Shown: positions 21,410 to 43,915 of the stretch, piece by piece | How positions within the stretch are numbered: position 1 is the first letter of the stretch | Layout of the letters: the number at the start of each line of letters is the position of its first letter | Origin: Dicyema japonicum | Taxonomy: Eukaryota > Animalia > Dicyemida | DNA length: 64,000 nucleotides | Reading direction: 5' to 3' | NCBI GenBank assembly: GCA_011109175.1 | Contig: RDEW01000023.1 | Location: forward strand, 159,225-223,224 | Position numbers and translations under genes: made by a program | The notes under the pieces: generated by a model | Seen by the model: only the letters and a program-made list of their open reading frames with translations | Databases searched by the model: none | Told to the model about the DNA's origin: nothing

Positions 21410-21665
21410 CCAAACTAAGTATATTGGTATACGACTTGCTTATATAATCTTTTTTTATACAAGGCTGGGACCTGGGATACCTCAATAAAGGAAGAGCACA
21501 GGCTGGAGTCTTTTCACAGGATTCACCTGAGCAAATAACAGGAATTAATTGGCCAATCAGAATCTCATGCAAAAGAATCTACAGGGAATGCGGCTGTTAG
21601 CCAATTATCATGGAAACAATTAAAAGACCAGAAATTACCATTTAATGATACGGAGTGAGGAACTC
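21410..21665 (+). mobile_element. RTE C-terminal remnant
   Basis: EEHRLESFHR.HL..ITGINWP.RIS, homologous to 34600-34812 and 57400-57720. Confidence 0.7.
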
Positions 21666-21949
21666 TGGAAAGGAATTCTCAATAATCGAAAGACGTGTCC
21701 ATGCATCTACGAGCATTCGCTAATGCACGAAATGCGATTGTGTGGATTCTATGGATGTAAAGACGACCACCCAATCCATCTTCCAATGTGACTTCCGGTA
21801 TCAAAGTGGTTAGTGTCGATTTGTCTTGATTATAAAACATGGTAAATGATTCTCTAGTGACTATTTTTTGGATGGAGTTTTTTTCAAGTTTTACAAAAAA
21901 CTTAATTATATAAATTGAACTAAATTGTTGGCGTTTTTTAGGAAATAAA

Positions 21950-23143
21950 TTATTCATTTAAAAAGACTAATGAAATGTTTTCTTGAATTTCTTCGGTATG
22001 TGATTTTGATTTGATATAAACAGTAGCTATGCTGCCACTAATAAGTAGTAGTCCGACAACTCCGCATACGATTCCAATCATTACATGTATCCGCCGTTTT
22101 TTCGGGGTTGGTGGTTTTTTAAAACATGTTTCTTCTAAAATTCAGTTGATTAAATTACCAAATCCGATAAATCCAAAATTCAAATCATTGCGGAAAAGTT
22201 GTAATTTAAAAGATGAAATTTCAATCGACATTCCATTGGAGTTGTTTTGTGAAATTAATCCGCAATGATAGTGATTGCCTAGTCTAATCCATTTGAAGAT
22301 TCGATCTACATGCAAACATTTAAGTTTCTTCTCATGTATGAAACAATAAACTAATTCAAAAATGTAATATTCATAAGCTGAATTATGTGCCAAAATAAAT
22401 ATTGAGGAATGCTTATCAGTCAATCTAAGCTCAATATGATAATTATCCAATTTATAGTAAGGCTCTTCCCTTTCGAAAAACTCATCCCTTATCTAAAAAT
22501 CAACCTACACGTTACAATGTTGTTATTTTTGATATATGATATTTTGATTTTTGCACTTAGAGCTCCACGGATTGTATCATTTTTAACTATAAACCAAATC
22601 GGTGTATTTGGGTCATTATTTGGGTTACAGTCATTCGCTAAGTAAATTATAATTAAAACCTTTTCCAGTAAAATATTCCAAAGAATTATTCTTGTAGAAT
22701 TGTAACTTCATAAAATAAATTATAAAAGAAAATTTATTAGAAAAACTAATAGGAATTGATCCACAGCGGTAGAAATCACCATATTTAGTTTTAGGAATCA
22801 TTGTGTTTCTAGTATATCGTTTGCCATCTTAAATATACTAAGAACTTACGTTGAAACATTTCTAATATTAATTCGACAGTATAAGATTCATTTTTAAATG
22901 TTGGAAAAAATTTAAAGTATACGAAAATATTTTCTAAACACGGCAAAACATTATCTCTTCTTCTTTGCTTCATATAAATCCTTGTTCATATTAAATTTTT
23001 TCTTCTAGAGTAAACAAAATATAGACAAATTCAGAAATATTCGGACAGTTCATATATGCCTCAAATAATAGCCTCCATTCAGATTTTAATGTGTCAATTT
23101 TGCTCAACAAAAAAAATACAATAAAATTATTAATCAGGTTCAT
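21950..23143 (-). CDS. Two-domain LAMP-like type I membrane protein, paralog A (one +1 frameshift near 22950)
   Basis: Signal-like MNLINNFIVFFLLS. Domain 1 KYGDFYRCG...KLQFY...TGK|ANDC. Domain 2 RLGNHYHCG...SFKLQLFRND..FG..|EETC. TM MIGIVCGVVGLLLISG. Five introns of 22-24 nt. Confidence 0.7.
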
Positions 23144-23329
23144 GTAATCAATTATAATTTAAATTAGGTTCATGTTTTATTTTAATTATTTATTTTTTAA
23201 TACAACTATTTATCATTTATATTTTTTTATTTTATCATTCAGCAATGTTCATATATTTTACAATATTTTTTTTTTTCAATGTAGCCTTGGAAGCAAAAGT
23301 CTTTAATATGCCCATTGAAATACAGACGC

Positions 23330-24030
23330 CTTTGACTAATGACAAGAAAATTACAGTGAAAATCTTTGTCACATGGATTTCAAACTTCCTTAATGAAAGA
23401 GAGAAGGGTAGTTTGCTGTGCACTAAATCTGTACATACATTTCTGCCAAACGGAGTCCCACAAAGGTTTCCTCATTAAATCATTTTGTTCAACATCTTCC
23501 TGAACGATGTGCCTTCTACAATGATGCACTTTTTTTCGTATAACAGTTCATCTTCAACGTTCTTATACAATCTTTCTAAAAATATTCAGATGTTATCCAC
23601 ATCTCCTTATTCTTTTTTGAGGTTCTTAAGCTCAGCCTCAAGCATCTCAAAAAGCTTAATTTATGTCAACGAAGTATTCCTCAATATAGTATATCCAATC
23701 GTTATTACTTAGAACTTCCAACCCATGACAATGACTCAGCAATTAGCAACAAAATAACTATAAAAATTAATTACGTATGCGGAAGTCACCATGCTATTAT
23801 AAAAACTCAAAAATGATCAATACCCAAGACCAACAATGTCAACCCATAATTTTCAAATATGGACCACTTTAGTAATCAATAAAATTACTACACTTCTAAA
23901 TGCTATATTTGCCAGAAAGGAAAACCTTTCCATTGGTTCTTCTGAACTACTAATACCTATCCAGAAACCTTGGTCATTGGAAAATTTACTCCTGATAATC
24001 TCTGATCTGAAAATCTGGAGTTGGTTACGT
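23330..24030 (+). mobile_element. Degenerate non-LTR RT fragments (GVPQ/LFNIFLND piece, then an RTE-like LLIPIQKP piece)
   Basis: WISNFLNER, NGVPQ, LFNIFLNDVP, INKITTLLNAIF...LLIPIQKP. Confidence 0.6.
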
Positions 24031-24699
24031 TGAATGGCTTCGAGACACGTAAAAAATTCATGAAATTTTCCTATTCTCTGTGTGTCTTATCGGTGTTCAG
24101 TCTAGTGTCTCATCGCGTCTGTCACAAGCACTAGTTTCTTGGACTCTTAGTCTTCTCTCTCCACATCATTTCGAAGGGCGTAGAAGTTTCTTCTGATCTG
24201 CATATGATGTAGTATATTTGATTAAATGTTGATTATTTTTTTGTCGAACAAATCATTATTCCAGACCACGTTTTTTTTATGACTAGAAGGTATTAAAGCA
24301 TGTTTGAATAAAAAAACTAAATCTTGACAGAAGTCGATTCAAGGAAGTTTCAGATCCCTATTATCTTTTTGGACTCCTTCATTTGTATTCTAGTCTTCTG
24401 CAAAAATAGATTGACATTGCTTAGACTGATGAAGATCCATCACTAATCGACAGAAGAAAATTGAGGAGAAACCGAAGCTTTTTTATAAAGTCAGTTGGCC
24501 TAACACTAGAGAAAATTTACTGTGGTAACTAAAGGGAATTAAATATTTTAAAAATTTCTGATAAAATATTGTTTATTTGGAATGCTTTTTTATTCACTAT
24601 TGACCCCACTGTTCTATTAAACTTTTATTTTTTTAAATTTTAAATTTATTGAACCAAAAAACACCGTCATAGATAAAATGAAAAAACTCAGGTGATTCT

Positions 24700-24950
24700 G
24701 CCGCAGTCTTAGAATGCTCGGTCTTGAAGGAAGTGCCGTCCAGAGGGAACTCCTTTGGATGGTTGTTGACTAATGGTCCTTTTTGGATATAATTTAGGAT
24801 TATATCTGGCGACACCAGAGATGGTGAACCACACGACGCACGCTAACAATTCAACGCTAAATTCAAGGGAGGGGAAGAGGAGAAGAATCAAAAAAATATT
24901 CTTCAATTCATGTAGCTACATGGCACCACACTAACTTTGTCGGCAAACTT
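24700..24950 (-). mobile_element. CRE-like remnant
   Basis: Nucleotide similarity to 46550-46690. Confidence 0.6.
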
Positions 24951-25053
24951 TTATTAAGCATAATAATTGAATTTAATACAACAAATTATATGGTCGTTCA
25001 TTATTTGTTTAGGTTTATTATTTGTTATTCTTTTTATTATTAAAAGAGAAATT

Positions 25054-25378
25054 CTAATCCTCTTACGTCTCTTGCTTTCTCCTCTAGTAAAGATTTTGGT
25101 CAACTCTTAGTATTATTTTCTTTCCCGATAGTGCACAAAAATACTCATACATTGTGCATCAGAGGACATACTTAGGAGCAGATATTTCTATCCACTTTAA
25201 TTTTACAAAGTAACGATTAACATCATATCATCACATAATAAATATTATTGTCTTAGCCCAACTACTACTGTTTGCAATAGCTCTTCATGAGTAATGTAAT
25301 ACTAATCCTTTTACGTCTCTTTGCTTTTCCCTTCTAGTAAAGATATTGGCCATTTCTTAGTATTATCCTCTTTCACTT
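25054..25378. repeat. Diverged ~75 bp direct repeat, copies 248 bp apart
   Basis: ctaatcct..tacgtctc...ctagtaaagat..tgg...cttagtattat at 25054 and 25302. Confidence 0.6.
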
Positions 25379-26677
25379 TATCGGCTGAAACGCATACACA
25401 TATAGTATTTCCACCGTAAAAGTTCCATAAAATTCACAAACGCCTACAACTGAGACTTATGTGCCATCTGGAGCAATACTGGACGAGGCAACTGACAATC
25501 ATAAATCATCCTTCCAATAAGATCAGGATATCAGATCAGCGAACCTACCTGGACATTGCACTCTGTTCCCATTTGGTTTTAAAAAAGTAAATCGTTGATC
25601 TATGACACTAGTGGTGACCATAATCCAATTTTGTTGAAGATCTGTAAAAGACCTTCCGAAAAAAATCAATATTATTTATAAAAAATGATGTACCAAATGA
25701 GGATTTAAGATTATGTTAATTTGTCGATTAGAATAAGAATGATCGTTTTGTGCCTAAAGTGATTGGTGTCCATTCAAAATACGGTCTTAATCTGCAAAAT
25801 AAAATTGGGATTGAAGTCGAGGGAAATTCTGATGATATTTTTCATGGAATCTAGACCATGCACATATTTGCAGTCAGATATTGGAATAGGATTAAAGAAC
25901 TTGCGCTTTACCAAACTATGTCAAAGATACAAATTAATCAGATCCGTGGAAGGCTGAACATTCCTTTAAGTCAGAGGAAATTATCCAGTCAAGGAGTTTG
26001 TTGAAAATGTTGAACTCTTATTACGAGAAACGTGGATGAAACACACTCAAAAGGCTGTGTTTTGCACAATCAGAGGCCTCACTTATCTACAGGTAAATTA
26101 GATTTTTAATTGTTTAGGTGTTAGCAATTTCCAAAGATATTAAGTTATTCTTGGAATCAACACTATTGTGCAATCTAATATTCAAGAAAAACAAGACAAT
26201 TCAAATATAAATGAATTGGAAGTCCAAGAAAAATCCAAAACTCATAATAAGGGTTATTCATGACCAAAGATAGTGAATCCAGTATAACTTTAAGAGAGTG
26301 AATATGTAGTCTCATTGTTATATAAGAATGAATAAAAGGAATTCGTCGATGTTGAAGATATTGTATATATTTTTAAATACATAGAGGTTCGTATAAAAAA
26401 ATTATGGATTTAAAGAAATTCGAGCTTCCACATGATGAACAAGTTATCATTGTTGCAAAATTGTGTCCAGTTTTGTAAACGTTAAAGATTGTGACGGTTC
26501 CATAAAAAGCACACTCAAAAAGCCTTAAAATGGTTAATAATTATCTTTAGCTTCCTTTGTAAAAACTGTCTGACACCGAAATGGCCCCAAGATATTCCAA
26601 ATTAGAGGTTTCTTCCAAAATGTGTCTTAAAAAGTTTAGTACTAAATTTGAGGAAATCAATTTTCTTAATAATTAAT

Positions 26678-27055
26678 AGGATGGAGTAGTAACAAAGTAC
26701 TACAAGTCCAATATGGAAAGACTCAATGCGGATGTCTCAACAACGGCGTACATCCAATCAACGACGATTAAAAAAACTTTAGAGAGCATGATAATCGAGC
26801 ATAGAGATGGGCTGAAAGTTGATAACTATGATGATGAGGTTACTAGAGTGACTAATCATCTTATCTCAAGAGGCTCTGAACTTGTAACTGAAATGGAAGA
26901 GGAACCAAGAGAAACAGCTGTTTTGTCTAGTGATTTGCTCTCTCAAATGGTATACGAGGAAAACAGTAAGGGTGATGCAAAGGGCCAATGTCCAAAGAAA
27001 AGGAGAATTCAGTTTGCATAGTGTTAATTACAATTAATTTTCTTCATTCGATTAT
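26678..27055 (+). mobile_element. R4/Dong-like element, 5'-truncated 3' end
   Basis: DGVVTKYYKSNMERL...TAYIQSTTIKKTLESMIIEH is homologous to 38138-38512. Confidence 0.85.
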
Positions 27056-27799
27056 TATATTAAACACAAGGTAATTTATCATTTTTTAATTTATTTACAA
27101 AGAAATCTTCATTTTCATGCTATTTTGTTTTTTCGAAGTGAATGGTCAATAACCGCAAAGAACATATTCAGGAATTTCTTCTTTGATTACATTGTGCATT
27201 GTGAAAGCATGTTCCATATCTTTCATGCATTCATGCTCTAAAAATCAATGATAAAAGATGTCCAAATTTTCAGTTTCTAATTATTTACTGATTAGTTGGG
27301 CTTTTTTGTTATCAGGTTGTGTCATAAAGTTCAACTTGTGAGGGCTTTTCAAAGCAATTTCGTTTTTCCGATCGATTATCATATTAACGATTAACTGTAT
27401 ACAATCTGTTTTACTAAATATAATTACAATCCGTATTCAAAATAACATGAGCATCGTACCTATGAGTATTTCATTTTTGTCCCGTTTTTAAAAATATAAT
27501 TTTTACTTTACTCAAGAAGAGTCCGGGAGTTGCTCGAAGGTAAGATCAATTTTACTTTGATTTCTTTTTTCTTTCAAGTTTCTCTTAGGGCTTCTAAAAA
27601 AATCAAAAAATAATGATCAATTGAAGTGGCGCTAACTTGTAGGTCGATCAGGACAAGAGAAGAAGTGGCTTCTGCCCATATAGAGCCCAGATAGATCACA
27701 TCCAAAAATTTGATCGTCAGATTTGGATATTTTTTTTATTTTAAAATTATTTTTAAAAATAATTAATTAATAAATGTTTAAAGAATATCTGGGGCTCTT

Positions 27800-28110
27800 C
27801 TGGTGAACGTAACATACATATCTTGATTGTGCTAGTGGGAGATAAACCTTACCACGAAGAACTTGACCAAGATCCATGACATTCAGTCAAATGCGGCTAA
27901 AGTACTGAAGAAGTCTTCTTGCAAGAAAATCCTCCTGGAGCTTTGAGAACATGATAAATATAATTCGTGTAATTGAACCACGTCCATGTTGCAAATGTGC
28001 CAGAACATGGTCTGAACACAAGTAAAGATTACTCCTTAAAGAAGTCGGGATCATCTTAAGTTCTCATTAATGCTATAACTATGGTTTTGATTAATTTAAC
28101 GTCTAATGAG
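27800..28110 (-). mobile_element. Highly degenerate non-LTR RT remnant
   Basis: VLAHLQHGRGSITRIIFIMFS resembles the HL......RI.F.DFS motif of Rex1/CR1-type RTs. Confidence 0.3.
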
Positions 28111-28559
28111 ACTGCTGTGAGTTCGAATCCTATACATGAATTTTACAACGGTCGAATCCCGTCAAATAGATCCTACCAGTGAAATGACTAGTCCTTATAT
28201 ACGATGCAGTCGTTCAAATGGATCTTCCTACCTTTCCCTAACCAAATCCACCATTGAGATTTCATTATGAAAACTCTTGATCCCGTCAAGCTCGACAAAC
28301 CATTTGTCTCTACAAATATTCGAAATTATCTTATTCATATGACAAATAATCCATATTGGGCGAGTCTTATATCATAATTTGTTCCTCACCGCTAATGGTG
28401 AGAAAATACATGATCTATATCGTGATTTATAGACTTTTTGTCGAGAGTCCATGATTACACATCTCGGAATTACGCTCATTAATATCGATGCCGCATCTGC
28501 TAAGGATTTCATAAGCCACTCAGTTTAACTGCAATCGTACCATTGTCAAATATCAATAA

Positions 28560-29940
28560 TTGAAAGACATATATAAGGGCTGCCTCGTCGGCTTCTACTA
28601 AAAGACCACGTAAAACCAAACTAATTATCACGTGATCCCGACGATGACTTCTTTTCGATTGTTCCGAAATTTTACTCCTTGTTTCCTGGTGGGATTTCGA
28701 CCCCCTAAAAACGAATTGATTTTTCTTAAATTCCCGATCACTAGGAGTACGATGAAGCATGTCCTCTTTGACAAAAAACACCTCAAATGCGAATCGCTGG
28801 ATAGATTAAAAATATTTGACTCACACTCAGCACTTCCTCATAAAAAAAGTCTTAACATTAAGATAATCGCTTATTTACTCAGGGCAGGACCGTATTATTC
28901 CCGACTAGAGCAGCTTGAGCATTTTGATTGGTCTTTCCTCAGTTCTACGGAGCAAATATTTAATGTCAAATTCGACGATGCTACATGGAAGCAAGTTACA
29001 CTACCAGTTAGATTTGGGAGTCTTGGAATCCGTCGTACATTGGACGTCTCACTTCCTGCACATCTGTCTTAACTCACGTCCTGCGAACCTTTGATCAGGA
29101 GGATTCTACACTCCCTACCCGATTTCTCAATTGACTAAGACATAATCCACGCACGAAAAGCCTGGAATGTCACCAACCTCCTCCTGCCTCCTTTACAAGA
29201 CTGTCAGCCAAACCTGGACTATTTATTATGTTGGACTCTCACTGGAATCAGCCAATCAGCACCGACGTGCTTGTTTGCTTTCAGGGGCTTTCCCGAGAGA
29301 AGTGCCTGCTCAAAGCCATTCCCAATGGAGTTCTGGGTACCTTCCTGGATGATGGATGCGTCTGTATTAAGATCTCATTGCGACTGTGATTAAAGTCTGT
29401 TTTCAACATCCGTGCCGATGCGGAAACAAGATCGACTGTTTTGGCCTACACCCTCTCTACTGCAGGAATAATGCAGGAATATTTCCCAGACACATGGCCT
29501 TGAACGAACTCGTTAAACGAGCTTTTGACGCCGCGGTCACCCTTCTATGCTCGAAACTGTCGGCTTTTGCAGACGGGACGGGAAACCAGATGAGATAACA
29601 ATCTTCCCTTTTGAAACCAAGAAACCACTTGTCTGGGACGTTACCTGAACGACACATCCAGAATGCCTCTGGAGCTGTTCTGCCAATGAGAAGGCCGAGA
29701 AGATGAACGGGAATAGTATGCGGTCTTACCCAATTATTTTTTGTTTGTTCCTCTCGCCGTTGAGACGTCTGTTTCCCTTGCGCCTGCGACGCTGGAATTC
29801 TTGAGTCGTCTAGGAAATCGGATCGTTACACGAAAAGGAGAACCTCGTGAGCGCTGCTGGATATTCAAGCGAATCTCGCTCGCTATTTCCTGAGAGGGAA
29901 TAGCCACGCAGTCAGGGCAGCCTCTATATAACTTTTTACT
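28560..29940 (+). mobile_element. CRE-like RLE element, degenerate
   Basis: LPVRFGSLGIR, HPCRCG..D.FGLHPL.CR, RHMALNELVKRAF, LVWDV, RGNSHAV. Confidence 0.9.
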
Positions 29941-30269
29941 CTATTTTCTTTCTTTAATAAATTTTTTAATATTTAAATAAACTAAAATTTTTACATACTT
30001 CAATAAAAATTTTACAACAACTTTTCTTATGGACAAACTTATTTTGGGAAAATAGCCAAATTTAATAATTTTTTATCTAAAAAAATTAAAAGTTATTGCA
30101 ACCAGTAACTTTTGAATTTTAGATAACAGTCGTGAGATTAGTGACTTTGTTAATTCTAGAGTCGGTTTTACAGTGACACCTGTGAAATAGTAATATAAAT
30201 GATAAACCTGTTTGTTTGAAATGTTTCTAAGACAAATTTTTTTTTATAAAGAAAAATTTTTTTAACAAT

Positions 30270-32720
30270 TAAACAAATGTCAGTTGAGGAAGCCTGCTGC
30301 GTGGATTGCGAACGAGTTCCCTCGGAAAATGGCTATTCCAATCTTTTGTCTTAGCCATAACCCTTCTCGTTGATCCCTTTTCTTTCTGGCAAGCAATCCT
30401 CCGAGTTCTTGCAAGAATTCAGCCGTTATTGGACCAACGGCTCCCGATGATTTGGTCGCAACAGATGTAAATCGGTAGCGATCCCCGAGGCAAGAATATT
30501 TCTTGATTTTTAGGTTCTCCGCAGTCGAAGCAGCTGCTCCAGGTGTCTGAACCGATTTAAAAATATTCATGCATGAGAAAGTGTCTGCACAAGTTGCGTC
30601 CCAGACCAAAGATCTTCCAGACGTGAAGCGGAAAAGGGTCATCCCGTCAGGTCTCTTCCCATCTCTTCGTTCATGAAGGACTTGCCGTGTCAAATGTCTG
30701 CAGTTTGAGAGAGACGATAGATATGCCGGGTACGCAACCTCCAGCGCCGATCTTAGACCGACACCTCCGAATCCAGAGGGAAGCTTACATTGTTTCCTAC
30801 CAAGTTCGTCAAGCGGACGTTAATTAATGACTCAACAGTTTGTTTGAGAGACTTGTCTATTGAAAGTAGAGTGTCGTATTGTTCGTAGCAGGGTGAACAT
30901 CGGAGTAGATATAAAAGCTTAGGTAGTCCAATGTTGTTTCTCATCAGGAAGAAAAATGTGTGAGAGTCGAGACATGACAATCTTTTCGCAAGGCGTGTTA
31001 ATTCTTCATTTTTGGAAAGTAGATGGTTCTTGAGTTCTTTTTCGCTGAGTGGGCATCCGAGGAAATATAATTTATCAACTGGCACAGTCGGGATCCCAGG
31101 AAGCAGTTCGTTAAAAGACTCCTTGATAGAGAAAAAGTCGGTGTATGGATATGAGACATTTATTAGCTCTGATTTGTTAACATTGATGTCCAAGACCAAA
31201 TGTTTTAATGCGGGTAACGCTTTACGTAATGAATTGTATGTTTATTTGAACGATCCTCCAATTGTGGCTTCATCGAGGTATCAGAGATTTAGCTGAGCAT
31301 TAATTGATCTCACAACCTCATCAATGGTCAAGGCAAATAATAGAGGTCCGAGCGGATCTCCTTGTTGTACACCCGTTTTTGATTTAATAATTTCATTTTC
31401 AAAAACCAAAGACGTATCTTCCCCATAGGATAATTGACAAGAAGGAAAAGCTTTGGAGCCCTCTTCCAACACGTTTTCATAATTTCATCTCTTCTGAGAG
31501 AATTGAAGGCATTCGTTATGTCCAACTTGATTCCAATGCATTCATTTGAAATATTTTTATGTGTGAAGAAACGCCTTGCTGCATGAACCGCAACCTCACA
31601 TCTGTTCTGGATACTAACACCCATTTGTTTAGGAAAGAACTCCTCTCCGAGTTGTCAGCTCACCAGGGTCGATGCTACTTTTGCTGCAAGTCTTCTAAAA
31701 TAGTTCCCGACCGCAATGGGGCCAGATTCCTCCGTTGGGTTTTTTGAAAGCAAATAGCCTTGCGGAGAAGAGCAATTCTCTGGCTTATTTATAAATGTCG
31801 CCGTTAACCATTTTTCTGATTAGGTCCGTAATTGATTTGACAAGACAGCGTCCAGCTCCCGAGGTGTAAGTGGACGTAAGGTCCTTAATATGGCCAGGAC
31901 GTAACCCTTCCAAGACTCCACCGCTGCTAGCGGTGAAGGAAGTTATTCCGTGACGCACTTCGGATTCGGTAATAATGATCTCCTGGGTTCCTTCAGGATT
32001 CAAAAACTTTTCATAGTCAGTCGGTGCATCTGGATGCTTTAGAATTAAGGTATTTAGGACCTCGGGAGTACAAGACAATACTGTGTCATCGGATGTGATA
32101 ACCTTCAAGGCTGCCCGCACGTCGCTTCCAGAAGTTTCCGGTTTACTCTCTCCTTTAGTTTGTTGGGGGCATCTTTGATGAATGCTCTTCTGGTTTCGAC
32201 CTCATTGACATTTGGCTGTTCAAGTATTGCGTGTATGTTATGACAGCTAAAATTCATTATGTTTCGTTTCAGTTTCACAGATAAGTTGAGTCGGGAGTTT
32301 GTTTCTTTATTATTGTCCTCAGATTCCTTTGTAGGTATTCCGAGTGCGACAGGTGCAAAGCATATAAGGTTTTAGCCAGGATTCCCAACTGTCAGAGGAT
32401 AGTGCGTGATCAATGGCATCTGAAAGACTCGTTGCTGCGGCAATTCGTACTCCTTTAGAGATTTTTACTGGGATTTTCATGGCTTTCCTGAGGTTCGAGA
32501 TCTTCAAGAGAGTATGATCTGTATGTGGCAGTGTAAAGTTTGACTGAGTTATTTTTTCCCGCCTGAGGCCTCCATTCCAATACAAAAGGGGCACAACCAA
32601 CTCGACAGCGTCTCGGCGCAAGCTTTACTCATTTTTATGCAGCCCAGATGGACGAATGATTCACATTGTGTGCAGTTAATATTTCCATAAGATTTTTGTT
32701 GATCACACCACACCACACCA
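30270..32720 (-). mobile_element. CRE-like RLE element, near full length, with an N-terminal PHD-like finger, internal deletion and frameshifts
   Basis: KLDITNAFNS, GVQQGDPLGPLLF, YLDEA, RDGKRPDG, LVWDATC. N-terminal CTQC....H..C...WLCPFC. Confidence 0.92.
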
Positions 32721-33353
32721 CTTTTTTAATTTTTTCGACGAAAAATTAAATAAAAAGCGAAAATTCCACAAGATATTTTCTAAAGAATGTCTTAATTTTT
32801 TCACTGATCTTTCTGATTGAACGTGAATTAACATGTTATAAAAAACTCGAAAAATTGAAAAATTATCTACAAAAATCGCACTTCTCATTAAATTTTGATG
32901 GAATCATCAATGAGTGAATTTTTTTCTAAATTCCGACTAGTCAAGACCCAGAACATTTGATAATATCAAATTTAGTTATGGAACTATCATTGACTCTCCA
33001 TTCTTATAGGAACAGCTTGTTTTCAGATATCTATAGGTTTCCAGTCCAATAAATTAACTAAAATGCGAAATATTAGTTTGAATTTATGTTTTTTTTGTAC
33101 TTTTAAATTGTAGTATTATTGTTTTCCCTAGTTTATCTAAATATTCGATAAGTTTTTCAAACTTAGACGAATGATGCTTCGCAAATGCTGTAATCTTCTT
33201 GATGGCTTAAGGAGAAAGTAATATCGCACATAGGCAATACGTCACTGAGAAATTTATTTTCATGCTAATTAATAATTTATGGTAACCTAAAAAATCTAGT
33301 TGTTTAATTTTTATTTAATAATAATTTTTTATCTTTCACAATTCATAATACTT

Positions 33354-33656
33354 TGGAAAATAGCCGCGTAGCGTCATGTGCTGCTTCGTTCCTAATTGAT
33401 TGAAGTTTCTGTTTTGTTCATCCGTTTCTCCTCTCTTCTTATTAGAGTGGGGTCATGTGATTCATCAAGGTGGCGCCCATGAAGAAGGATCATTTGCTCT
33501 CCCCCACTCCACAGGAGGGATTTCCACAACTGCAGCTATGGACGTTTTTTTCCTTTATGCTGATTTCGGATGGACTCTTTCTGTTGTAGTGGAACTAGAT
33601 ACATTTAATTAATTGTTTAATAACTTCTTCTCGGTGTATCCGGGGTTATTAAATTA
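33354..33656 (+). mobile_element. ~300 bp LINE-3'-derived short element with TSD ataatactt
   Basis: TSD at 33345-33353 and 33657-33665. Colinear with 48531-48846. The end is homologous to the Jockey-like ORF2 end and 3' UTR at 55690-55770. Confidence 0.75.
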
Positions 33657-34099
33657 ATAATACTTCGTTCTTTCTAAAAAATTGACAAAATCAATAATAG
33701 CGTTAACTATCCCTCGCAAATATTCACTTTAAACAAAAAGAAAAATTTATCGACAATTCTTTGGCATGATAATAAGTTGTTGTCGTCCTTATAACGAAAT
33801 ATTTGCACTTTTTGTTCAATGTGAATCTAGTATACCTACTACTAGAGGCACAACGAGGCATGCTACTCGAATAATGTTTTATGGTTTTAATTTTCAGTAA
33901 TTTTTTTAAAAACTTTAAAAAATTCTGGCAAATTTCGTAATTGGCAAATTTTCACTAAAATTAGAATATTTTTAAAAAAGTGACAAATCTGAGAATTGGC
34001 AAGTTTGAGAGAGTTTACTGTAAATAAATATGTTAACCAGTTCTAGTCGCAAAACATGATAAGGGAGTGAGGTTGTTTACCAGATCTTTATTAGAAAAA

Positions 34100-34290
34100 A
34101 TGTATGAAATTTAGAGTGAATTTAAAAAAAAAACGCAAAAAATTTCGACAAGAATAAGCTAAGTACTTTAGGGGTCGTAAAAAAAGAATAATTTCGATAT
34201 TCCTCAGTGGATGATTGATATTCAAATCCAAAATTTTTAAATTTGATTCCGAATTAAAAGATGAGTTAATCGACTTAAAATTATACATTT
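34100..34290 (+). mobile_element. hAT transposase C-terminal remnant
   Basis: FDIPQWMID...DSELKDELIDLK. Confidence 0.5.
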
Positions 34291-34314
34291 TATAATTTAA
34301 TTAAAATTTTTTTT

Positions 34315-34495
34315 TTAACAATTAAACAAATATCAGTTGAGGAAGCCTGCTGCGTGGATTGCGAACGAGTTCCCTCGGAGTATGGCTATTCCAATCTTTT
34401 GTCTTAGCCATAGCCCTTCTTGTTGATCCCTTTTTCTTTCTGGCAAGCAATCCTCCGAGTTCTTGCAAGAATTCAGCCGTCATTGGACCAACGGA
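34315..34495 (-). mobile_element. CRE-like 3' end, same subfamily as 10455 and 30270
   Basis: Near identity of the AEFLQELGG...AAGFLN region and tail. Confidence 0.9.
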
Positions 34496-34599
34496 ATACC
34501 TCAGTTTTGGCAAATTCGAAGTTTATAGAAGTTTCCAAAATTATGTAATTTGATCTCTCAGATAATATTTTACTTTCCACCCACCGGCTTAAACAATAA

Positions 34600-34812
34600 G
34601 TGATCATCACCAAACTTTAAAACCACAAAGATATTGGTATACAACTTGCTTATAAAATCTATTCTTCTATACAAGGCTGGGACCTAGGCACTCTCAATAG
34701 AGGAAGAATAGAGGACGGAGTCTTTTAACAGGAATCATCTGATAAAAATAACAGGAAAGAATTGGACGACCAGGGTCTCTTGAAAGGAATCTACGAGAAA
34801 TGTGGTGGTCCC
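34600..34812 (+). mobile_element. RTE C-terminal remnant
   Basis: Homologous to 21410-21600. Confidence 0.65.
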
Positions 34813-34814
34813 CA

Positions 34815-34918
34815 GAAAAATACGATAAAATTATTAATCAGGTTCATGTAATCCACATATAATATAATTTAAATTAAATTTTATTTATATTTTTACAACT
34901 ATTTATTATTTATATTTG
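34815..34918 (-). pseudogene. Promoter and first codons of a third LAMP-like paralog (C)
   Basis: The minus strand gattacATGAACCTGATTAATAATTTTAT (ATG at 34847) is identical to the paralog A start. Upstream similarity resumes after 38565. Confidence 0.7.
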
Positions 34919-34932
34919 TTCTGGTTCAATGT

Positions 34933-37900
34933 AATTATTGTAAAATTATAAAAACGTGTAGTTGTTGTGGTGTTGACATGTCCGTTTCTAATCATACCGA
35001 GAAATCGAATCCTATGGGCCTTCCTGCAAAATTAAATAAAGAAGATAGTTTAGTAGAAGCAGGACCGTCGTCTGTGGGGCTGGATAATGTCACAAGAACT
35101 AATATCAACATCGCTGGGAATATTGGTGCCAAAACCAACTTGCATTCATTATCTGCCATTATTGAAGAGGTCGACTGTGTCTCTGAAGCTGAGTGGGTAT
35201 CTCAGATTTTTCTTGCCACGAAACAAAGATTTGGAAGGATACCTAGAGGTGGCTGGAACCTCGTACTCAAAAAGTTCAATGAAAAGTACTCCAAGAATTC
35301 CAGTCTATGTCAACTAAAAAAGATGCTGAAACCTGAAAATCGGAATAACAATGTAAAAGGAGGCGAATGTTTCAAAGTGCAAAATAATACTAATGTGGAA
35401 ATTTCCACCTTCAGAAATTGCCTTGAGGAACTAAAAGTACAAATTGAGAAAATTAAGTCAATTCCGAGGGATACTCGAAAACCAACACCCAAAATTCAGA
35501 GAAAGTATGTCAGAGTTAATGTTTTGTCGGGACTAAATTCTGCAATATATTATATTACGAAAGATAATCCGCCTCAAGATATCAATCAAATTACTGATAT
35601 TCTATATGCTGCACAGTGTGCTTATATGACTTTAACTGCGAAGGTTAAACCGCAAAGTACGTGGTTGGAGAACACTGAAAAGAAAATCTCAAAGCTGATG
35701 GCAGAACTAGAACTTGTCAATCGCTTTTCCAGACAAGCTCTCCCTGTGTATGAAAAACAAAAGGTTATGGATGTTCTTTGTGCCTATGGATACAAAAGGG
35801 CCAAAAAGGGGAGGTTGCCAGGATTGAGGCTCTACTATGTGACCTTGTCAGAATTAAGAAAAAGCAAATAGCTGTACATCATTCGAGGAAGGACTTTCGC
35901 AAGGACAACTGTTGTTTTGAATTAAATCGAAGAAGATTTTATCGGAACCTATCAGCAAGCAATGAAGTAACGTTATATGGTTTCGATGATGAGGATTGTA
36001 TGTCGTTTTGGGAAAAAGTGTGGTCTAAAAGAAAAGAGATGAACGTGCCATATGACAGTGTGGGTAAAGTAAATACTGGTATTGAAGGCATGTTGCCAGA
36101 GTTCACAAATGAGTTTATCCTGGATGTTATTAAATGGCTCCCTGATTGGAAGGCGTGTGGATGCGATGGCTCATATAACTTCTTTATTAAGAAAATGGAA
36201 TCTTTACATGGCTTTTTATGTACTGAGATTAACCGAATTATTAATGGGGAATATATGCCTGAAAGTTGGTTTTATACTGGAATAACCTATTTAATTCCTA
36301 AAAAGGATGATTGTGAGACTCCTAATGACTTACGTCCTATCACGTGTATGCCAACTTTATATAAACTTATACCAAATGTGTTAATTCCAAACTCTCAGAT
36401 TTTGTGGATTCGTTTGGGCTATTATCTGACAATCAGCTGGGAACGAGGAAACATTGTCAGGGCGCTAAGGAACAGGCCCTTATTAATCAATGCTTAAATA
36501 AGGAGTATGGAAACGCCCTTTATTCTGCTTGGGTGGATGTGAAGAAGGCCTTTGATTCTGTTGACCATGAATTTTTATTTCATGTATTGGACTGCTCAGG
36601 AATACCCCGTTGGATTGTAAACTTTGTAAAGACCATAGTCAAGAAGTGGACTGTAAATCTCCACTTAGATGGAAGAAGAATTGGTTCTGTAAAACTGGGA
36701 CGGGGAATTTTGCAAGGAGATTCATTATCCCCTCAACTATTTGTTATGGTAATGGAACCCTTGAGCAGGACCCTTAACTTTATGTTCCCAAGACTCCAAA
36801 TTAATCAGGAGGATCCTAATACACTGACTTATTCTACAAATCATTTGTTATTCATTGATGACCTAAAGATATTTGGGCTAAAAGAAGATACTGTTATTAA
36901 AATGATGGAAGTTGTTCGCGATTTCTTTCATGTTGCCGGCTTGGAGATGAATTCGGAAAAGTCACTGTCTAATGTTAAATCGTTATCATGTTGTGAGAAT
37001 CTGGAAGGAGTCAGTGGATATCGATATTTGGGTGTTTTTGAAGATGAGGGAAGTAATGTTCTTAAAAGCAAAGTTATGGAGTCCATACTTGAAAATGTTA
37101 AAAGAGAATAACCATGCTTTCAAAAACAAAGTTAAATTCTGTGAACTTATTTCGCGCAATAAATGAATACGCAATGTCCCTAACTATTATATAGGATTAA
37201 TTAATATTGAACCATACGAATTTGATGATATTGACCAACAAATACGGCAACTGCTTACGTCACTCAAGTTGCACCTCAAACCTGCAAATAAAGAGAGGCT
37301 GTATTTGGACAGGAAGACTTTTGGAAGAGGACTTTCCTCGATTTCATTAAAGAGCGAATTAATACTTTTCCAGTTTTTTAAAAGTTTGGAAAAACAATCG
37401 ACTGTGTGTTTGCGAAGGTCGGGGATTCTGCGAGTAATAAAAACAAAAAAATGGCACTTGGCTACAATCGCAGGATTTCTTGCCTCTAAATATGCAATTG
37501 CCGACAGGGAAAGCATGGATATTAAGTCCCTCAAGGACACTCAGAAAAAATATTTACTAAATAAAATTTATTGCAGAACACTACACTCAATTATGTTCAA
37601 ATGTATTGATGAAACAAATGTCGACCTATATACTTCCTCAGAATGGTTATCCAAAGGAAATAACGGCCCACGGAGCGAAGCATTGTACTGTCTTTTGCAA
37701 GATAGGAATTTGTTTTTTGCACACACGGGGTCATTATGCAACCATTGTAAAAAAAGCAAGAAAACTGTTGATCATTTGGCCACTCAGTGTGGAAAAATGC
37801 TAAATAGTGATTATCTCCGAAGACATAATGAAGTGGTAAAGTGCATCCATCTTCATCTTTGTCGAATTTATGGAATCAAAAGAAGCAGGAAATTGAAAGG

Positions 37901-38550
37901 ACATTCGGTTCAGTCAATATTGACGAATCAAAATGTCGAAATTAGAGTTGACTCGTCGATTTTGACAGAAACAAAAGTCCAATACAATAAACCTGATATT
38001 TTCGTGTATGACAAAATAAAGAAGGAAGTAACGTTAATTGAAGTGGGGATTACCTCACAAGACCGACTAAAGCAAGTTGAAGTTGAGAAACTTCACAAAT
38101 ATGACTTGCTAGCAAATGAACTTTCGCTGCTCTATGAATGCCAAGTGAAGATTATTCCTGTGGTTTTGACATGGGATGGAGTTGTTCAAGATGCTTCAAG
38201 AATCATATGGATAAATTATCTATTGAAGAATCAACGAGGACTTACATCCAATCGGTTGTACTGAAGAGAACGCTCGAAAGTATGCTCATTGAACATAAGC
38301 ATGGGATGAAGGTATACGATGAAGAGTACGCCTCTGCTACCTCCCAACTTGTGGAACTGGCATGCCGTGAAGACAGCCCACTGGACTCAAACGGAGATAT
38401 TTTGACTGAATCTGATGTGGAGATGCGGAGTAACAGGGAGGTTATGGCACACTCTTCTTCTAAGAGAAGAAGAGGGATTACCAACAATCTGGATCAAAAT
38501 ACGCTTAATTAATTAATTAGTTAATTTATTCGTTATTATATAATTCGTTT
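34933..38550 (+). mobile_element. Full-length R4/Dong-like RLE non-LTR retrotransposon with a 14 bp TSD and about 5 frameshifts
   Basis: TTCTGGTTCAATGT at 34919-34932 and 38551-38564. RT motifs LRPITC, DVKKAFDSV, GILQGDSLSP, FIDDLK. CCHC finger CNHC...H...C. RLE KPDIFV..IEVG...EK. Confidence 0.95.
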
Positions 38551-38619
38551 TTCTGGTTCAATGTTATTTTATTATTCAGCAATTTTAGCAAAGGTAGTTG
38601 AACGTTCCACTACATCTGT

Positions 38620-39700
38620 AAGTATATTTCTGCCAATCGGAGTCTCACGAGGGTGTCATCAGTAACTTATTTTGTTCAATATCTTTCTGAACGAGATGCC
38701 CTCTTTAAATATGCACTTGTCTCGTATACGCTGACGATATGATCATCACAGCAAGAGACAAGTGTGATCACACAGGGCTGTAGCTCTAATAGATCACCTT
38801 AGTAGTTGGCTTGAGGAAATTATTTTTACTTCAAATAGAAGACTAACTTATTCTGGATCGCTCTTAACCTTAAATGAATATTTAATCCCTCCCAGTAACA
38901 CTGTCAAGTTATTGGATAACAAGTAAGACTCCCTCATGACTTTCGGTACACTCTTTAAAACGTCTTCTCGTAGCTTTTTACGCTGGTGGAATACTCAAGG
39001 AGAGTTTTCGAACTAATGGAACCTTATTACTTGGTTTAACAATCGTTGACTTTAAGTATTTAATCGACGAATAAGTATTTAATCGTTTAGAAGTGGCATT
39101 CAATGCATCCTCTAGAAATTATTGGATGACTGTCAATTTTTTAATTCACGGCTTACCCTGGTTTAATAAAGAGGACTGTTAATTGTTCAATCACTGAACA
39201 GCGCTAATTCTTATGACTGCTGCGAATACTCCCACAGTTCTGTTGATCGTTCCCCAATTTCCGTTAGTTCACTATGGATGTGACAACTATTTGCATGCTG
39301 GGACCACTGACCAGATCATCAATAGCTCCCCTGCTTACGAAAACTACCGTAGATATGGAACCGGATTCCTCCGCGTCTATGAGAAAAATGGAAACCCGCT
39401 TCGTTTATACTTTTCAAAGGAAAAAGAAAACCGATTGGTTCAAAAATTCCCATCTCCAATCGGATTCTTCTTCAGAGAACTAATGACCCCCACGGTATGT
39501 TATAATATAATTTATTCTTTACACTCTCTTCTCGGCTTCAAGGACAACATGCTAAAGAATAGCCAATCAGGTTTAAATCCCATCCGCGTACTATATTGGA
39601 TTCACAACCTTGAAAACCCTCAGAGACACTGTATATATCATAGTGTACATAAGACCCAATGATGAATTACATAAATTTAGACGATTCGCCAAGATTAATG
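38620..39700 (+). mobile_element. Jockey/I-group LINE 3' half, degenerate
   Basis: LFNIFLNEMP, YADDMII and the downstream thumb/C-terminal region, which includes ORF 39213-39662. Confidence 0.6.
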
Positions 39701-40089
39701 CTATAAGCAATGATTTTTTTCTCATCTTCAAACCGTCTCCAGTACCCCTGCGTGATTTAGTTATTGCATGGAAAGTCTACTTAGCTTACTAATGGATGAA
39801 ATCCTTTGTCTTCTTCCTCTAGAGAATGAGCAGTAGACAAAATCAGAGGACGTCGGAAACCAGATTCTGATGAAAGGAAGTCTGATCACGCAGAATTCGA
39901 TCTCTAATTCCATCTAACCAAGCCAAATTCTCTCTATATCTGACTATCTAGAAAATGCGGGAAATCTATGGAGAATGAGACGAACCAAATGAATGAAATT
40001 GCTAAAATTTTGTCAAACAAACAAATAGAAGTTTATTTCATTTTGTTATCACAGAATAAGGAACTTTCGGAGATTTGAAAATTGTCAAC

Positions 40090-41850
40090 ATGGGTAGAGC
40101 CACTAAAATATGGACTTAAAAATAAATTCTTTGATTTTTGCTTAGAAACAAATCCGCCCGATCGCGGTCGGATTCACCTTCAGGAGACTAGCAGCCAAGA
40201 TTGTTTTCAGATTTTCTACGTCAATCTTCTCAAAATCCTTACTTCCCAGTCAAGTTGGAGTCGGAGTTCGTCTCTGATGTGAGGCAGCCGTTCACTCCGT
40301 CAGTACATTCAGGGACCGCAGCATTCAAGGCTTTAAAAGGCACATTATGGTAAAGCTGGATATCAAGAACGCTTTAAACAGTTTAAGAAAAGACTGCTTT
40401 CTGAAGGCCTGCAAAGAAAGATGTCCATATATATTTGAACTGGTCAATTATTCATACGGAAAGCCTACGTCACTATTGCACGGGAACTTCATGGTTCCAT
40501 CATCCTCAGGTGTTCAACAGAGCAACCCCTTCAGACTACTGCTGTTCTCCCTCAGAATTGAGAGGATTACAAAGAGAGGATTACACTCAACATCTGGTAC
40601 TTCAATAACGCTGTTTTAGGAGTCCCCCGGAAATGGTCTTCCATGAGTTAGAAGTACTCATCCACGCGATGTCCGAGGTGGTCTTGAGTTGATCTTGAGT
40701 TGAATCCAACGAAATGTGAAATAACATACTGTGGTCTTGCTGAAGATGACTTCTCATTAATTGTTCCCAAATTTTACTCCTTGTTTCTTGGTGGGATTTC
40801 GACACCTGAAAACGAATTGATTTTTCTCGGATCCCCGATCATTAGGAGTTCGATGAAGCATGTCTTCTTTAACAAAAACAACTCCTATAAGAATCGTTTG
40901 ATAGATTACAGCTACTTGAGTCACACTCAGCACTATTTCTCATGAAAAGACGTCTTAAAATTCAGAGAATCGTCTATTTACTTATAGAGTCCTGTACTAT
41001 TCCCGACTAGAGCAGCTTGAGCATTTTGATTGGTCTTTCCTCAGTTCTACGGAGCAAATATTTAATGTCAAATTCGACGATGCTACATGGAAGCAAGTTA
41101 CACTACCAGTTAGATTTGGGAGTCTTGGAATCCGTCGTACATTGGACGTCTCACTTCCTGCACATCTGTCTTAACTCACGTCCTGCGAACCTTTGATCAG
41201 GAGGATTCTACACTCCCTACCCGATTTCTCAATTGACTAAGACATAATCCACGCACGAAAAGCCTGGAATGTCACCAACCTCCTCCTGCCTCCTTTACAA
41301 GACTGTCAGCCAAACCTGGACTATTTATTATGTTGGACTCTCACTGGAATCAGCCAATCAGCACCGACGTGCTTGTTTGCTTTCAGCGGCTTCTCCCGAG
41401 AGCGGTGCCTGCTCAACGCCATTCCCAATGGAGTTCTAGAAACGTTCCTGGATGATGGATGTGTCTGTATTGAGATCTCGTTGCGACTGGATTAAAAGTC
41501 TGTTTTCAACAGCCAAGATCGACTGTTTTGGCCTACACCCTCTATCCTGCAGGAAGAGTGTAGGCATATTTCATAGACACATGGCCTTGAACGAAGTCGT
41601 TAGGCGAGCTTTGACGCCGCCGGACACTTCTCCATGCTCGAACCTGTCGGCCTTAGCAGACGGGACGAGAAACCAGATGGGATGACAATCTTACCTTTTG
41701 AAGCCGGGAAACCACTTGCCTGAGACGTTACCTGCAACGACACATTTGCCTCTTGCAAACAGCTCCAGAATGCCTCTGGAGCTGTTCTGCCAATGAGAAG
41801 GCCGAGAAGAGCAGCCTCTATATAACCTTTTACTCTTTTTTCTTTCTTCA
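40090..41850 (+). mobile_element. CRE-like RLE element, degenerate, same subfamily as 28560
   Basis: VKLDIKNALNS, GVQQSNP, DGTRNQ and nucleotide identity with the 28.9 kb copy. Confidence 0.9.
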
Positions 41851-42595
41851 AATTAGTCCAGTATAATAGTTATCATAAAAAATTAATATTGATTGAATGA
41901 CAGGTTACTGGTTGATTGACAGGTGATTTGTAACCACTCGTGCGGGACACGACATATATATCCTCCTGCAAAAGTGGAAACATTCACATTCCTCTAAGTA
42001 AAAGCTGTTGTTATTATTTTGAAATCTTGTCAAACAATTACTTTTTCATGCACCGTGAATACACTAAGTACTGAATTTGACACATTTATTTATAATAGTG
42101 AATTTCCATTAATAAATAATTATTCCGAAAACCAAAAGTAAAACCAAACAAATTTACTGATCCTGACGTATTCCAGAAAAACCATCACACAAGAACAGTG
42201 ATCCAGAAGACGTCCACCGAAAAGCTGAGATCAATTCCAGAACTTGTCGGCAGGGAACGAAATTGTCTCTGTGGGATGAATAGTTTATTTTTTTGAATGC
42301 TGACAAACATTTGCCGTCCCTTGAGTTAGTAGGATTTAATGAAAACATTAGATAGAACGAAAAAAATTTAATCAAATAACTATATAACACAACAAGGCGT
42401 TTGCCGCCTTGTCAAGTTATTGAAAAATATTTATCAAGAGAAATTCGTCATGCTAAAATTTTTGACTATAATAAAAAATATTTAATAAAAAATCGTTATA
42501 AAATATCTATTATAGATATTAAGTAATAATTAAATAAAAAAATTATATTGAAATGTTAAATAAAATAAAATTTGACCTAATAAAATTTAGATTAC

Positions 42596-43915
42596 ATGAA
42601 CAGAACTATTCATTTTGTAATATTTATTCTTTTTAGCAAAATCGTTAAAATAAAAAGTGATTGGAGATATATAGTAATTGACTCATATGCAATTCTGAAA
42701 ACTCCTTCTGAAGTATATATTTGTTAACTTTAGGAATTTAATTTATGTATGTTAAATAGGGATCAACATATAGATGACTGGAAATCTCATGGAGCGCTTA
42801 GGTTATCTCTAGATAATATGAATTTTAAACTTATTCCACACTTTTACGATGAGTTTTATACTATTGACTTAATAACAGAAATTGTTTATGGTATTTTTTT
42901 GTTGTACTTAAGGTGGTAAACATTTTAAAAACATCACAAAGATACCTCAAACTAAATATGGGGATTACTACCGATGTGGTTTTACTCATATTAGATTTCC
43001 GAATCATTTATCTGTTACAATTTATTCAAACAAGTTGCAATATCACGATGATGGTTTTTTGATTTTACTGGAAAAGGTTTTAATTAAAATTTATTTAGCT
43101 AATGACTGTAACCCAAATAATGACCCAAATACGCCGATTTGGTTTTTATTTAACAAAAAGATAATCAGAGGAGTAATAAGTGGAAATATCAAAATATCAT
43201 ATATTGACAATAACAGAATTGTACACGTGAACATTGATTCTTAGATAACAGATGAGCATTTCAGTGATTATGATTATAATATTTTAACATATTATTATAG
43301 TTACTATAAATATGTATTGACTAGTAAACATGCTACAATAACTATTACGGCGTATGAACAATTTGAGAATACATATCAAATTTATAAATTTTCTGTTTGT
43401 GTTGGGCATAGAAATAATAAATGCGTTTTATTGGAAAAGCAATTTAAAAAAATTAAAATGGGAGGATTTTATCACTGTGGATTCATTTCACAAAGCTATA
43501 AAAATGTGACTATCGAACTTTCATCTCTTAAATTACAATTTTTCCGCAATGATCTGATTTTTGAATTTATTGGAGATGGTAAATAAATCCGGCTGATTTT
43601 TAGATGAAGGATGCTTTGAAACACAGTCATCTACTGAAATTAAAGACAAAAAAACCACGATTCAACATCATAATATTGCAGATGGTGAGTAAACCCGACT
43701 GAATTTTAGATAAAATAAGTTTTAAAGATCTAATATCGTCTGAAACTAAATCCGTAAAAAAACTGACGAAACATCAAATAATTGGAATCGTGTGTGGAGT
43801 TGTCGGACTACTGTTGTCATTGGTACTATTTATAATACTTACTGGCGTCATTGGTAATATTTATATCAAAATGAAATCTCGTAAAAAATCATTCATCACC
43901 GAACCATTCCTTTAG
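42596..43915 (+). CDS. Two-domain LAMP-like type I membrane protein, paralog B (one -1 frameshift in the T-run at ~43055)
   Basis: Introns at 42713-42733, 42891-42912, 43077-43098, 43221-43244, 43579-43603, 43685-43709 (21-25 nt). Signal-like N-terminus, YYRCG and FYHCG motifs, KLQ strands, TM IIGIVCGVVGLLLSLVLFII, short basic tail. Confidence 0.75.

Follow-up and report, generated by a model that had tools for sequence, protein, structure and literature searches.

A very large gene family of the dicyemid Dicyema japonicum, probably derived from LAMP

Genes A (21950-23143, minus strand) and B (42596-43915, plus strand) and a third locus (34586-34900, minus strand) lie in a 64,000-nucleotide stretch of the Dicyema japonicum genome (GenBank assembly GCA_011109175.1, contig RDEW01000023.1, positions 159,225 to 223,224 of the forward strand; hereafter the window). 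Very probably, these loci belong to a large dicyemid-restricted birth-and-death family derived from the lysosome-associated membrane proteins (LAMPs), with the encoded architecture described below and a putative endolysosomal role. A sequence-only reading of the window had reported an expanded, lineage-specific family with three loci in 22 kb. All three loci exist, but the family is genome-wide, with approximately 130 loci among the matches listed; the observation was real but mis-scaled, its claims being partly confirmed and its interpretation partly supported. Of the three loci in the window, B appears to be intact, A was recently inactivated and the third is what a deletion left behind.

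Dicyema japonicum is a parasite that lives in octopus kidneys. The assembly comprises 67,542,437 bases in 377 scaffolds, and the published description of the genome lists 67.5 Mb, 377 scaffolds, 5,012 genes and 49% repeats (table 1 of PMC6736024). The window is AT-rich (GC 27-43%), and its genes are split by GT..AG introns of 21-25 nt each. As had been proposed, A and B are paralogs with a similar exon layout, five intron positions in common and the same start context (gattacATGAAC); the linker (ANDCNPNNDPNTPIWF) and the membrane core (IGIVCGVVGLLL) are also common to both and nearly identical. In this analysis, joined spliced proteins were built only for checks of reading frame, residue features and substitution rates, and all searches and structure predictions used single exons.

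Evidence for a LAMP Origin

Assignment of the A/B-type genes to the LAMP family holds on the basis of the modelled fold, a chain of sequence matches and a link to mucin-type LAMP genes of the same genome, three independent lines that agree. AlphaFold2 models of exon 5, prepared from paralog alignments, had a mean confidence score (pLDDT) of 78 and a predicted template modelling score (pTM) of 0.67 for A, and 82 and 0.74, respectively, for B. The high-probability Foldseek matches of both models were LAMP-3 (4akm), LAMP-1 (5gv0) and LAMP-2 (5gv3), with probabilities of 0.93-1.00 and TM-scores of 0.48-0.61. A VIA scan of 48,161 chains, which is independent of Foldseek, placed LAMP-2, LAMP-3, two LAMP-1 and two ATP6AP1 chains in the top six positions for A and B (Z 8.0-6.2 over 95-105 aligned residues), with the next chain at 5.3 or 4.8. 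The LAMP-like fold suggested by the sequence-only reading was thus recovered from single exon-5 models.

The chain of sequence matches runs through sister subfamilies. Exons 3 and 4 of B match a second subfamily (AHDCDPSNDP) at E 7e-21, and for all four exon-5 pieces of that subfamily that were scanned, PF01299 (Lamp2-like_luminal) was the sole or top Pfam match (E 1.8e-4 to 8e-3). These are exon-level scores, the exons having been scanned singly, and at 16-22 bits they lie below the PF01299 gathering cut-off of 27.2. As for the link to the mucin-type genes, the A/B family profile aligns with an exon of a mucin-LAMP gene at an hhalign probability of 96.5% (E 1e-9, 96 columns), and the membrane exons of the mucin-LAMP genes match PF21222 (Lamp2_2nd) with 27.1 bits in a genome scan (cut-off 27) and with E 5e-6 to 1e-3 by hmmscan.

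The two-domain organization noted earlier was likewise supported. Domains 1 and 2 are homologous to each other, as judged by tblastx (37% over 43 residues) and by hhalign, which aligns the profile of exon 3 with that of exon 5 at a probability of 96.7% (E 4e-10). In both domains the C-terminal Cys pair occupies the LAMP position (YYRCG...ANDC and YHCG...DEGC). The N-terminal pair is off the LAMP position; domain 2 has a C-x8-C pair and domain 1 a single further Cys. The positions of Cys, Gly and Tyr, the open reading frames (ORFs) and the fold persist across subfamilies at only 20-25% identity. The hydropathy profile of B, with an N-terminal hydrophobic core, a single span at approximately residues 355-385 and a tail of approximately 15 residues, predicts a type I topology, in agreement with the membrane-protein layout proposed before. 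Overall, the encoded protein is predicted to begin with a signal peptide, followed by two LAMP-type beta-prism domains that are homologous to each other; the short linker between them is rich in Asn and Pro and contains the Cys that would close domain 1. A stalk, which is made of phase-1 mini-exons and differs in length between copies, a single transmembrane helix and a cytosolic tail of 15-20 residues would complete the protein.

This organization resembles that of vertebrate LAMP-1 and LAMP-2 (PF01299 and PF21222), which share the type I topology, two tandem beta-prism luminal domains with a short hinge, the motif Y-x-C ... [KQ]-[LV]-Q-x-F ... C-x-x-D in the C-terminal part of each domain, and one membrane helix, Gly-rich at its core, ahead of a short tail, in addition to the fold match (Z 6.2-8.0). 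Unlike LAMP-1 and LAMP-2, the A/B-type proteins lack a Pfam match and the GYxxPhi tail, carry hardly any N-glycosylation sequons and have the C-x8-C pair of domain 2 in place of the N-terminal disulfide; moreover, their dN/dS (the ratio of nonsynonymous to synonymous substitution rates) is near 1, and the genome holds approximately 130 loci among the matches listed instead of one to a few. Proteins of the CD68/LAMP-3 type combine a mucin region with one LAMP domain. Genes of this type in the same genome align to the A/B family, whereas A and B themselves differ in having a second domain and in lacking both the mucin region and the Tyr signal.

Family Size, Tiers and Lineage Restriction

Exon 5 of A matches 132 places in the genome, and exons 3 and 4 of B match at least 150, with scores computed for 150 of 243 candidates. 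With a profile built from 32 exon-5 sequences, at least 149 matches reached E <= 1e-3 when 150 of 266 candidates were scored. Counted by hand among the matches listed for this profile, these fall at approximately 130 distinct places, spread over more than 40 scaffolds and locally clustered on C1, C24, C112, C317 and C335, and about half of the places (approximately 65 loci) carry a full-length, stop-free exon 5 of 111 codons. The genome-wide paralog count therefore yields far more than a few copies. At least four tiers can be distinguished in the superfamily:

Tier 1, A/B type: linker ANDCNPNNDPNTPIWF; approximately 60-65 loci
Tier 2, subfamily: linker AHDCDPSNDPNV..YWYF; tails such as MEYIPIF; approximately 45 loci
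Tier 3, subfamily: linker ANDCNPSNDPNTPIWYF; tails such as ENIPML or ESIPML
Tier 4, a handful of genes: Thr-rich mucin region plus one domain; tails NYEPLI, SYEEVN, SYEELN and NYQEI

The tier-4 (mucin-LAMP) genes combine Thr-rich repeats, a single LAMP domain with the motif LKAQFFRSDNSTEFMGDG and YxxPhi C-termini, in the manner of CD68 and LAMP-3. Two lie in tandem on C1 (within 1194940-1198035), and one each is found near C279:430498 (428998-432093) and near C1:1441172 (1439672-1442767). At least 26 other copies match B with a DNA identity of 81-93%, and the introns are part of this similarity. The ectodomains had been described as very divergent; this is so between A and B, but it reflects membership of different clades and not the distance of B from its closest copies.

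No true relative of the family was found with the exon-5 profile among 1.84 billion representative proteins; the two matches were to repeat proteins, one of them bacterial with Ig-like repeats and the other a coiled coil, and were judged spurious. A word search with a 196-residue read-through ORF of a paralog and a search of JGI metagenome contigs found no relative, and the ESM Atlas gave no usable match. The searched libraries appear to lack dicyemid proteomes, so that the restriction means 'not detectable outside this genome', with other dicyemids not covered. An intron-less copy was also sought, and the long 'open frames' in genome tables proved to be wrong-frame read-throughs or nonexistent; a 191-residue ORF on C345 spans domain 1. 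Neither of the two papers on the dicyemid genome and its expression mentions LAMP (PMC6736024; PMC6854800), and literature text searches returned no paper linking dicyemids with LAMP proteins.

LAMPs are low-copy housekeeping proteins in other animals, yet a genome with approximately 5,000 predicted genes holds approximately 130 LAMP-derived loci among the matches listed, of which perhaps 40-65 are usable. Tiny introns and sequence drift can conceal such a large family from Pfam-based annotation.

Copy Decay, Selection and a Conserved Leader

The lineage-specific expansion with birth and death that had been proposed is well reflected in these loci, many of which are broken. With a liberal splice search, a full ORF with membrane helix was found in nine of 27 B-clade copies; of six A-clade copies sampled, none gives a full ORF. 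Among the nine intact copies, pairwise Nei-Gojobori (NG86) estimates, which are not a site model, gave the following dN/dS values by segment:

Signal peptide: 0.43
Domain 1, N-terminal half: 1.09
Domain 1, C-terminal half: 0.43
Linker and exon 4: 1.08 (dS only 0.08)
Domain 2, N-terminal half: 1.63 (codon bootstrap 1.00-2.87)
Domain 2, C-terminal half: 0.62
Stalk and membrane helix: 0.62

Purifying selection throughout, as in an ordinary lysosomal LAMP, is thus not what the comparison by domain gave. Broken copies show the same mosaic as intact ones, as would be expected if breakage were recent. Together, the sequences indicate a birth-and-death process in which the C-terminal half of each domain, the linker and the anchor are constrained and the N-terminal halves are relaxed or diversifying. 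Exon 4 and the linker (43099-43220) have a synonymous divergence of 0.08, compared with 0.17-0.25 elsewhere in the gene, which points to nucleotide-level constraint or gene conversion. The tiny introns are less diverged than synonymous sites (Jukes-Cantor distances of 0.11 and 0.19, respectively; 19 copies).

Homology among 14 copies begins approximately 93 nt upstream of the ATG, is lost further upstream and fades past the 3' untranslated region (UTR). The Jukes-Cantor distance is 0.23 for the leader and 0.43 for the 3' UTR. The start context gattacATGAAC recurs in at least 12 other copies behind this conserved leader of approximately 95 nt, which may be a family-specific promoter. Dozens of copies share the leader together with a (G/A)ACCTAAT box approximately 25-33 nt before gattacATGAAC (in the window, 42503-42595, 23144-23235 and 34848-34900). 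The ends of the repeated unit were inspected for transposon hallmarks and showed neither terminal repeats nor poly(A).

Tails, Sorting and a Proposed Role

The tails of A (...ENISLVFLNE) and B (...SFITEPFL) contain no Tyr and, as the sequence-only reading had stated, no GYxxPhi. Conversely, YxxPhi tails are retained by sister subfamilies, for example as MEYIPIF and MVYVPIL, and the mucin-LAMP genes likewise keep the signal (NYEPLI, NYQEI). A-type tails elsewhere in the genome belong to an ESIPL[ISN]FVTN class and include some ESIPLI, and the B-type class SLFTEPFL contains neither YxxPhi nor ExxxL[LI]. Tails with ESIPLI, ENIPML or ESIPML conform to the acidic dileucine class of signals for endolysosomal sorting, as in LIMP-2 and the invariant chain; the ENISLV of gene A itself is only a near-fit. 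Because some A-type and subfamily-3 tails are dileucine-like, loss of the Tyr need not mean export and, on sequence grounds, does not by itself indicate surface delivery. If any copies reach the surface, those of the B type are the likeliest to do so.

Dicyemids lack a gut. Because they are gutless and feed by endocytosis, the family is an obvious candidate for the remodelling of the absorptive surface and lysosomes for parasitism. Nutrient uptake by endocytosis has been described for the peripheral cells (PMC6854800; PMC6736024). For the family we infer a location, sorting and role along these lines: the proteins would line the luminal or extracellular face of endocytic and lysosomal membranes in the ciliated peripheral cells, which take up host urine by endocytosis as food. 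Tail classes may direct members to separate compartments, among them perhaps the apical surface, with YxxPhi in the sister subfamilies, ExxxL[LI]-like signals in the A type and neither in the B type. The N-terminal half of each domain changes fast, while the C-terminal half, linker and anchor are conserved. A bolder extension, which we regard as unlikely, is that the largest gene family of the most reduced known animal genome is a repertoire of LAMP beta-prisms on the apical endocytic membrane, its variable N-terminal halves binding host cargo or defence molecules; this would be an undescribed structural kind of host interface.

Alternative Explanations

Several observations weigh against a functional family of LAMP descent. 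The structure models span approximately 100 of the approximately 150 residues of domain 2, and domain 1 is reached through the internal duplication. The VIA scores of 7-8 are in the middling range by the tool's own scale, and ATP6AP1 scores as high as the LAMPs. Eight single exons of A and B gave nothing relevant in Pfam at E <= 10, no Lamp model being among the matches, and the last exon of either gene does not match PF21222; the exon-5 profile found only a chance match among PDB sequences (a papillomavirus capsid, E 0.7), and the ESM Atlas gave no usable match for A or B. Since the A and B exons have no direct match in these three resources, LAMP membership rests on the fold and the chain of homology. 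The overall dN/dS of 0.87 is hard to separate from relaxed constraint, broken copies being alike. Finally, B has three N-x-S/T sites, two of them in the ectodomain, which is no more than chance (shuffled sequences average 3.2 +/- 1.6); for this reason, its sequence does not suggest a heavily glycosylated coat protein of the LAMP-1/2 kind.

The equal standing of ATP6AP1 in the fold comparison (its chains score Z 7.7-6.8, interleaved with the LAMPs) raises the question of whether the genes are instead relatives of this V-ATPase accessory subunit (Ac45), whose luminal domain has the same beta-prism fold followed by a membrane helix. Such a relationship is highly improbable, as the N-terminal part differs and there is no sequence-family signal: Lamp2-like_luminal and Lamp2_2nd are the only Pfam families of the superfamily that were matched, and PF05827 appears in no hmmscan output (E <= 1-10). 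Moreover, the layout of two tandem domains and the YxxPhi C-terminus of the sister subfamilies are LAMP-1/2-like. ATP6AP1 is a single-copy gene in other animals, and more than 100 copies would be implausible for a pump subunit. A different reading, which takes the loci as mostly non-functional repeats, i.e., a unit the size of a gene that was multiplied by segmental or transposon-mediated duplication and now decays neutrally, is distinctly improbable, even though two thirds of the sampled copies are broken, the overall dN/dS is the same in broken copies, copies 81-98% identical including introns occur on more than 40 scaffolds, and 49% of the genome is repeats (PMC6736024). Neutral decay fits poorly with the survival of ORFs, Cys/Gly/Tyr positions and fold at 20-25% identity between subfamilies, with values of 0.43-0.62 in the C-terminal halves, and with the approximately 65 loci (among the matches listed) that keep a full stop-free 111-codon exon. 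In addition, conservation is higher in the promoter than in the 3' UTR, homology ends at the gene borders, and the unit ends lack terminal repeats and poly(A).

A variant host-interface family resembling surface antigens would share the LAMP descent and differ in its use: Tyr-less copies such as B would reach the apical membrane by default, and fast-evolving prism faces would serve evasion or the binding of varied host molecules. We consider this use possible but rather unlikely. Large variant membrane-protein families of parasites likewise have numerous copies, both clustered locally and dispersed, with many pseudogenes among them, and combine a conserved anchor and promoter with exposed segments that change fast; this family differs from them in being built on a LAMP fold. 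The high copy number and many pseudogenes, a dN/dS at or above 1 in both N-terminal halves beside a conserved anchor and promoter, B-type tails without YxxPhi and without ExxxL[LI], and shifts in stalk length by mini-exon duplication all agree with such a use. However, the best dN/dS value has a lower confidence limit of 1.00, some A-type and subfamily-3 tails keep dileucine-like endolysosomal signals, and little glycan shielding is predicted. Classical antigenic variation would also have no obvious selective agent in the cephalopod host; to our knowledge, cephalopods have no adaptive immunity. The LAMP-derived family with a putative endolysosomal role is therefore preferred, and the loci of the window are described below on that basis.

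Gene B

Gene B gives one ORF of 400 residues, but only if a 22-nt GT..AG stretch at 43077-43098, homologous to an intron of its paralogs, is read through; the ORF is 167 residues long when this stretch is spliced. Its features are as follows:

42503-42595, plus: conserved promoter or 5' leader (putative); ends in gattac before the ATG and holds the GACCTAAT box
42596-42712, plus: exon 1; signal peptide and start of domain 1; hydrophobic core (2.97 in a Kyte-Doolittle 9-residue window)
42734-42890, plus: exon 2; encodes the N-terminal half of domain 1, which is variable (intact copies have a dN/dS of 1.09)
42913-43220, plus: exons 3 and 4, read through as a single exon; encodes the C-terminal half of domain 1 (YYRCG ... 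KLQY), linker ANDCNPNNDPNTPIWF and first strands of domain 2
43077-43098, plus: retained 22-nt GT..AG intron homolog; frame kept only if read through
43245-43578, plus: exon 5; core of domain 2, approximately 100 of approximately 150 LAMP-domain residues (AlphaFold2 pLDDT 82, pTM 0.74)
43604-43684, plus: exon 6; phase-1 stalk mini-exon from a 106-nt tandem duplication of exon and intron
43710-43915, plus: exon 7; stalk, transmembrane helix (IIGIVCGVVGLLL...) and tail (...KMKSRKKSFITEPFL)
42713-42733, 42891-42912, 43221-43244, 43579-43603 and 43685-43709, plus: introns

The stretch homologous to 43077-43098 must be spliced in A and most paralogs, and the changed state in B is explained by a 1-nt loss in a T run just upstream. 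A copy on C55, 76% identical to B, has the same retained-intron state (ORF of 401 residues), and a copy on C326 carries a 21-nt version of the intron that is in frame whether spliced or retained. In the sub-lineage of B, a 22-nt intron thus seems to have turned into coding sequence after the upstream 1-nt loss and read-through. Exon 6, which is absent from A, derives from an internal repeat (43568-43669 and 43674-43775). Further duplication of stalk and anchor exons is seen in a copy on C334 (365918-369082), in which two membrane-helix exons follow one another at locus coordinates 666-1022. The intron of B at 43221-43244 contains CACGTG.

Gene A and Its Twin

Gene A is disrupted. With the homologous 22-nt intron 1, a stop is reached at codon 56, and the frame is rescued only by non-homologous introns of 35-59 nt.

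23143-23027, 23004-22850, 22827-22660, 22637-22516, 22492-22159 and 22134-21950, minus: six exons; exon 2 frameshifted
22948-22958, minus: indel cluster of exon 2 in an AG-rich run, net +1 nt relative to the twin in the alignment (stop at codon 56)
21353-23319, minus: duplication unit, 97.6% identical to scaffold C68

The twin on C68 (655210-658473) is 97.6-98.4% identical to A over up to 1,976 nt. The net +1-nt indel near 22948-22958 is assigned to A because exon 2 is open in this 98%-identical twin, which has its own 1-nt insertion in exon 5 (ORF of 213, compared with 56 in A). The two copies, on different scaffolds and approximately 98% identical, are therefore each disrupted by a separate indel of 1-nt scale, in exon 2 and exon 5, respectively. 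From these alignments, A is most likely a young pseudogene or an assembly error; no intact copy occurs among the six A-clade copies sampled.

Third Locus

The third locus, which had been counted as a further locus of the family, retains only the promoter-like leader and 12 codons:

34815-34900, minus: promoter-like leader, gattacATG (ATG at 34847) and 11 codons, to 34815, identical to the A type
34586-34807, minus: joined DNA, with 76-78% identity to the sequence that flanks A (21386-21593) and its twin on the 3' side

By tblastx, 11 of 11 residues are identical to the A-type start, and the frame continues for one codon more. Because the stub is fused to DNA resembling the 3' flank of A, the locus is, by sequence comparison, a deletion remnant of an A-type copy whose gene body was lost internally. 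Interruption by a transposon insertion was considered and rejected in favour of the internal deletion. Beyond the DNA that resembles the 3' flank of A lies a high-copy repeat of 94 nt (34400-34494), which occurs with 97-98% identity in very many genomic places (808 first-look candidates) and is probably a transposon end.

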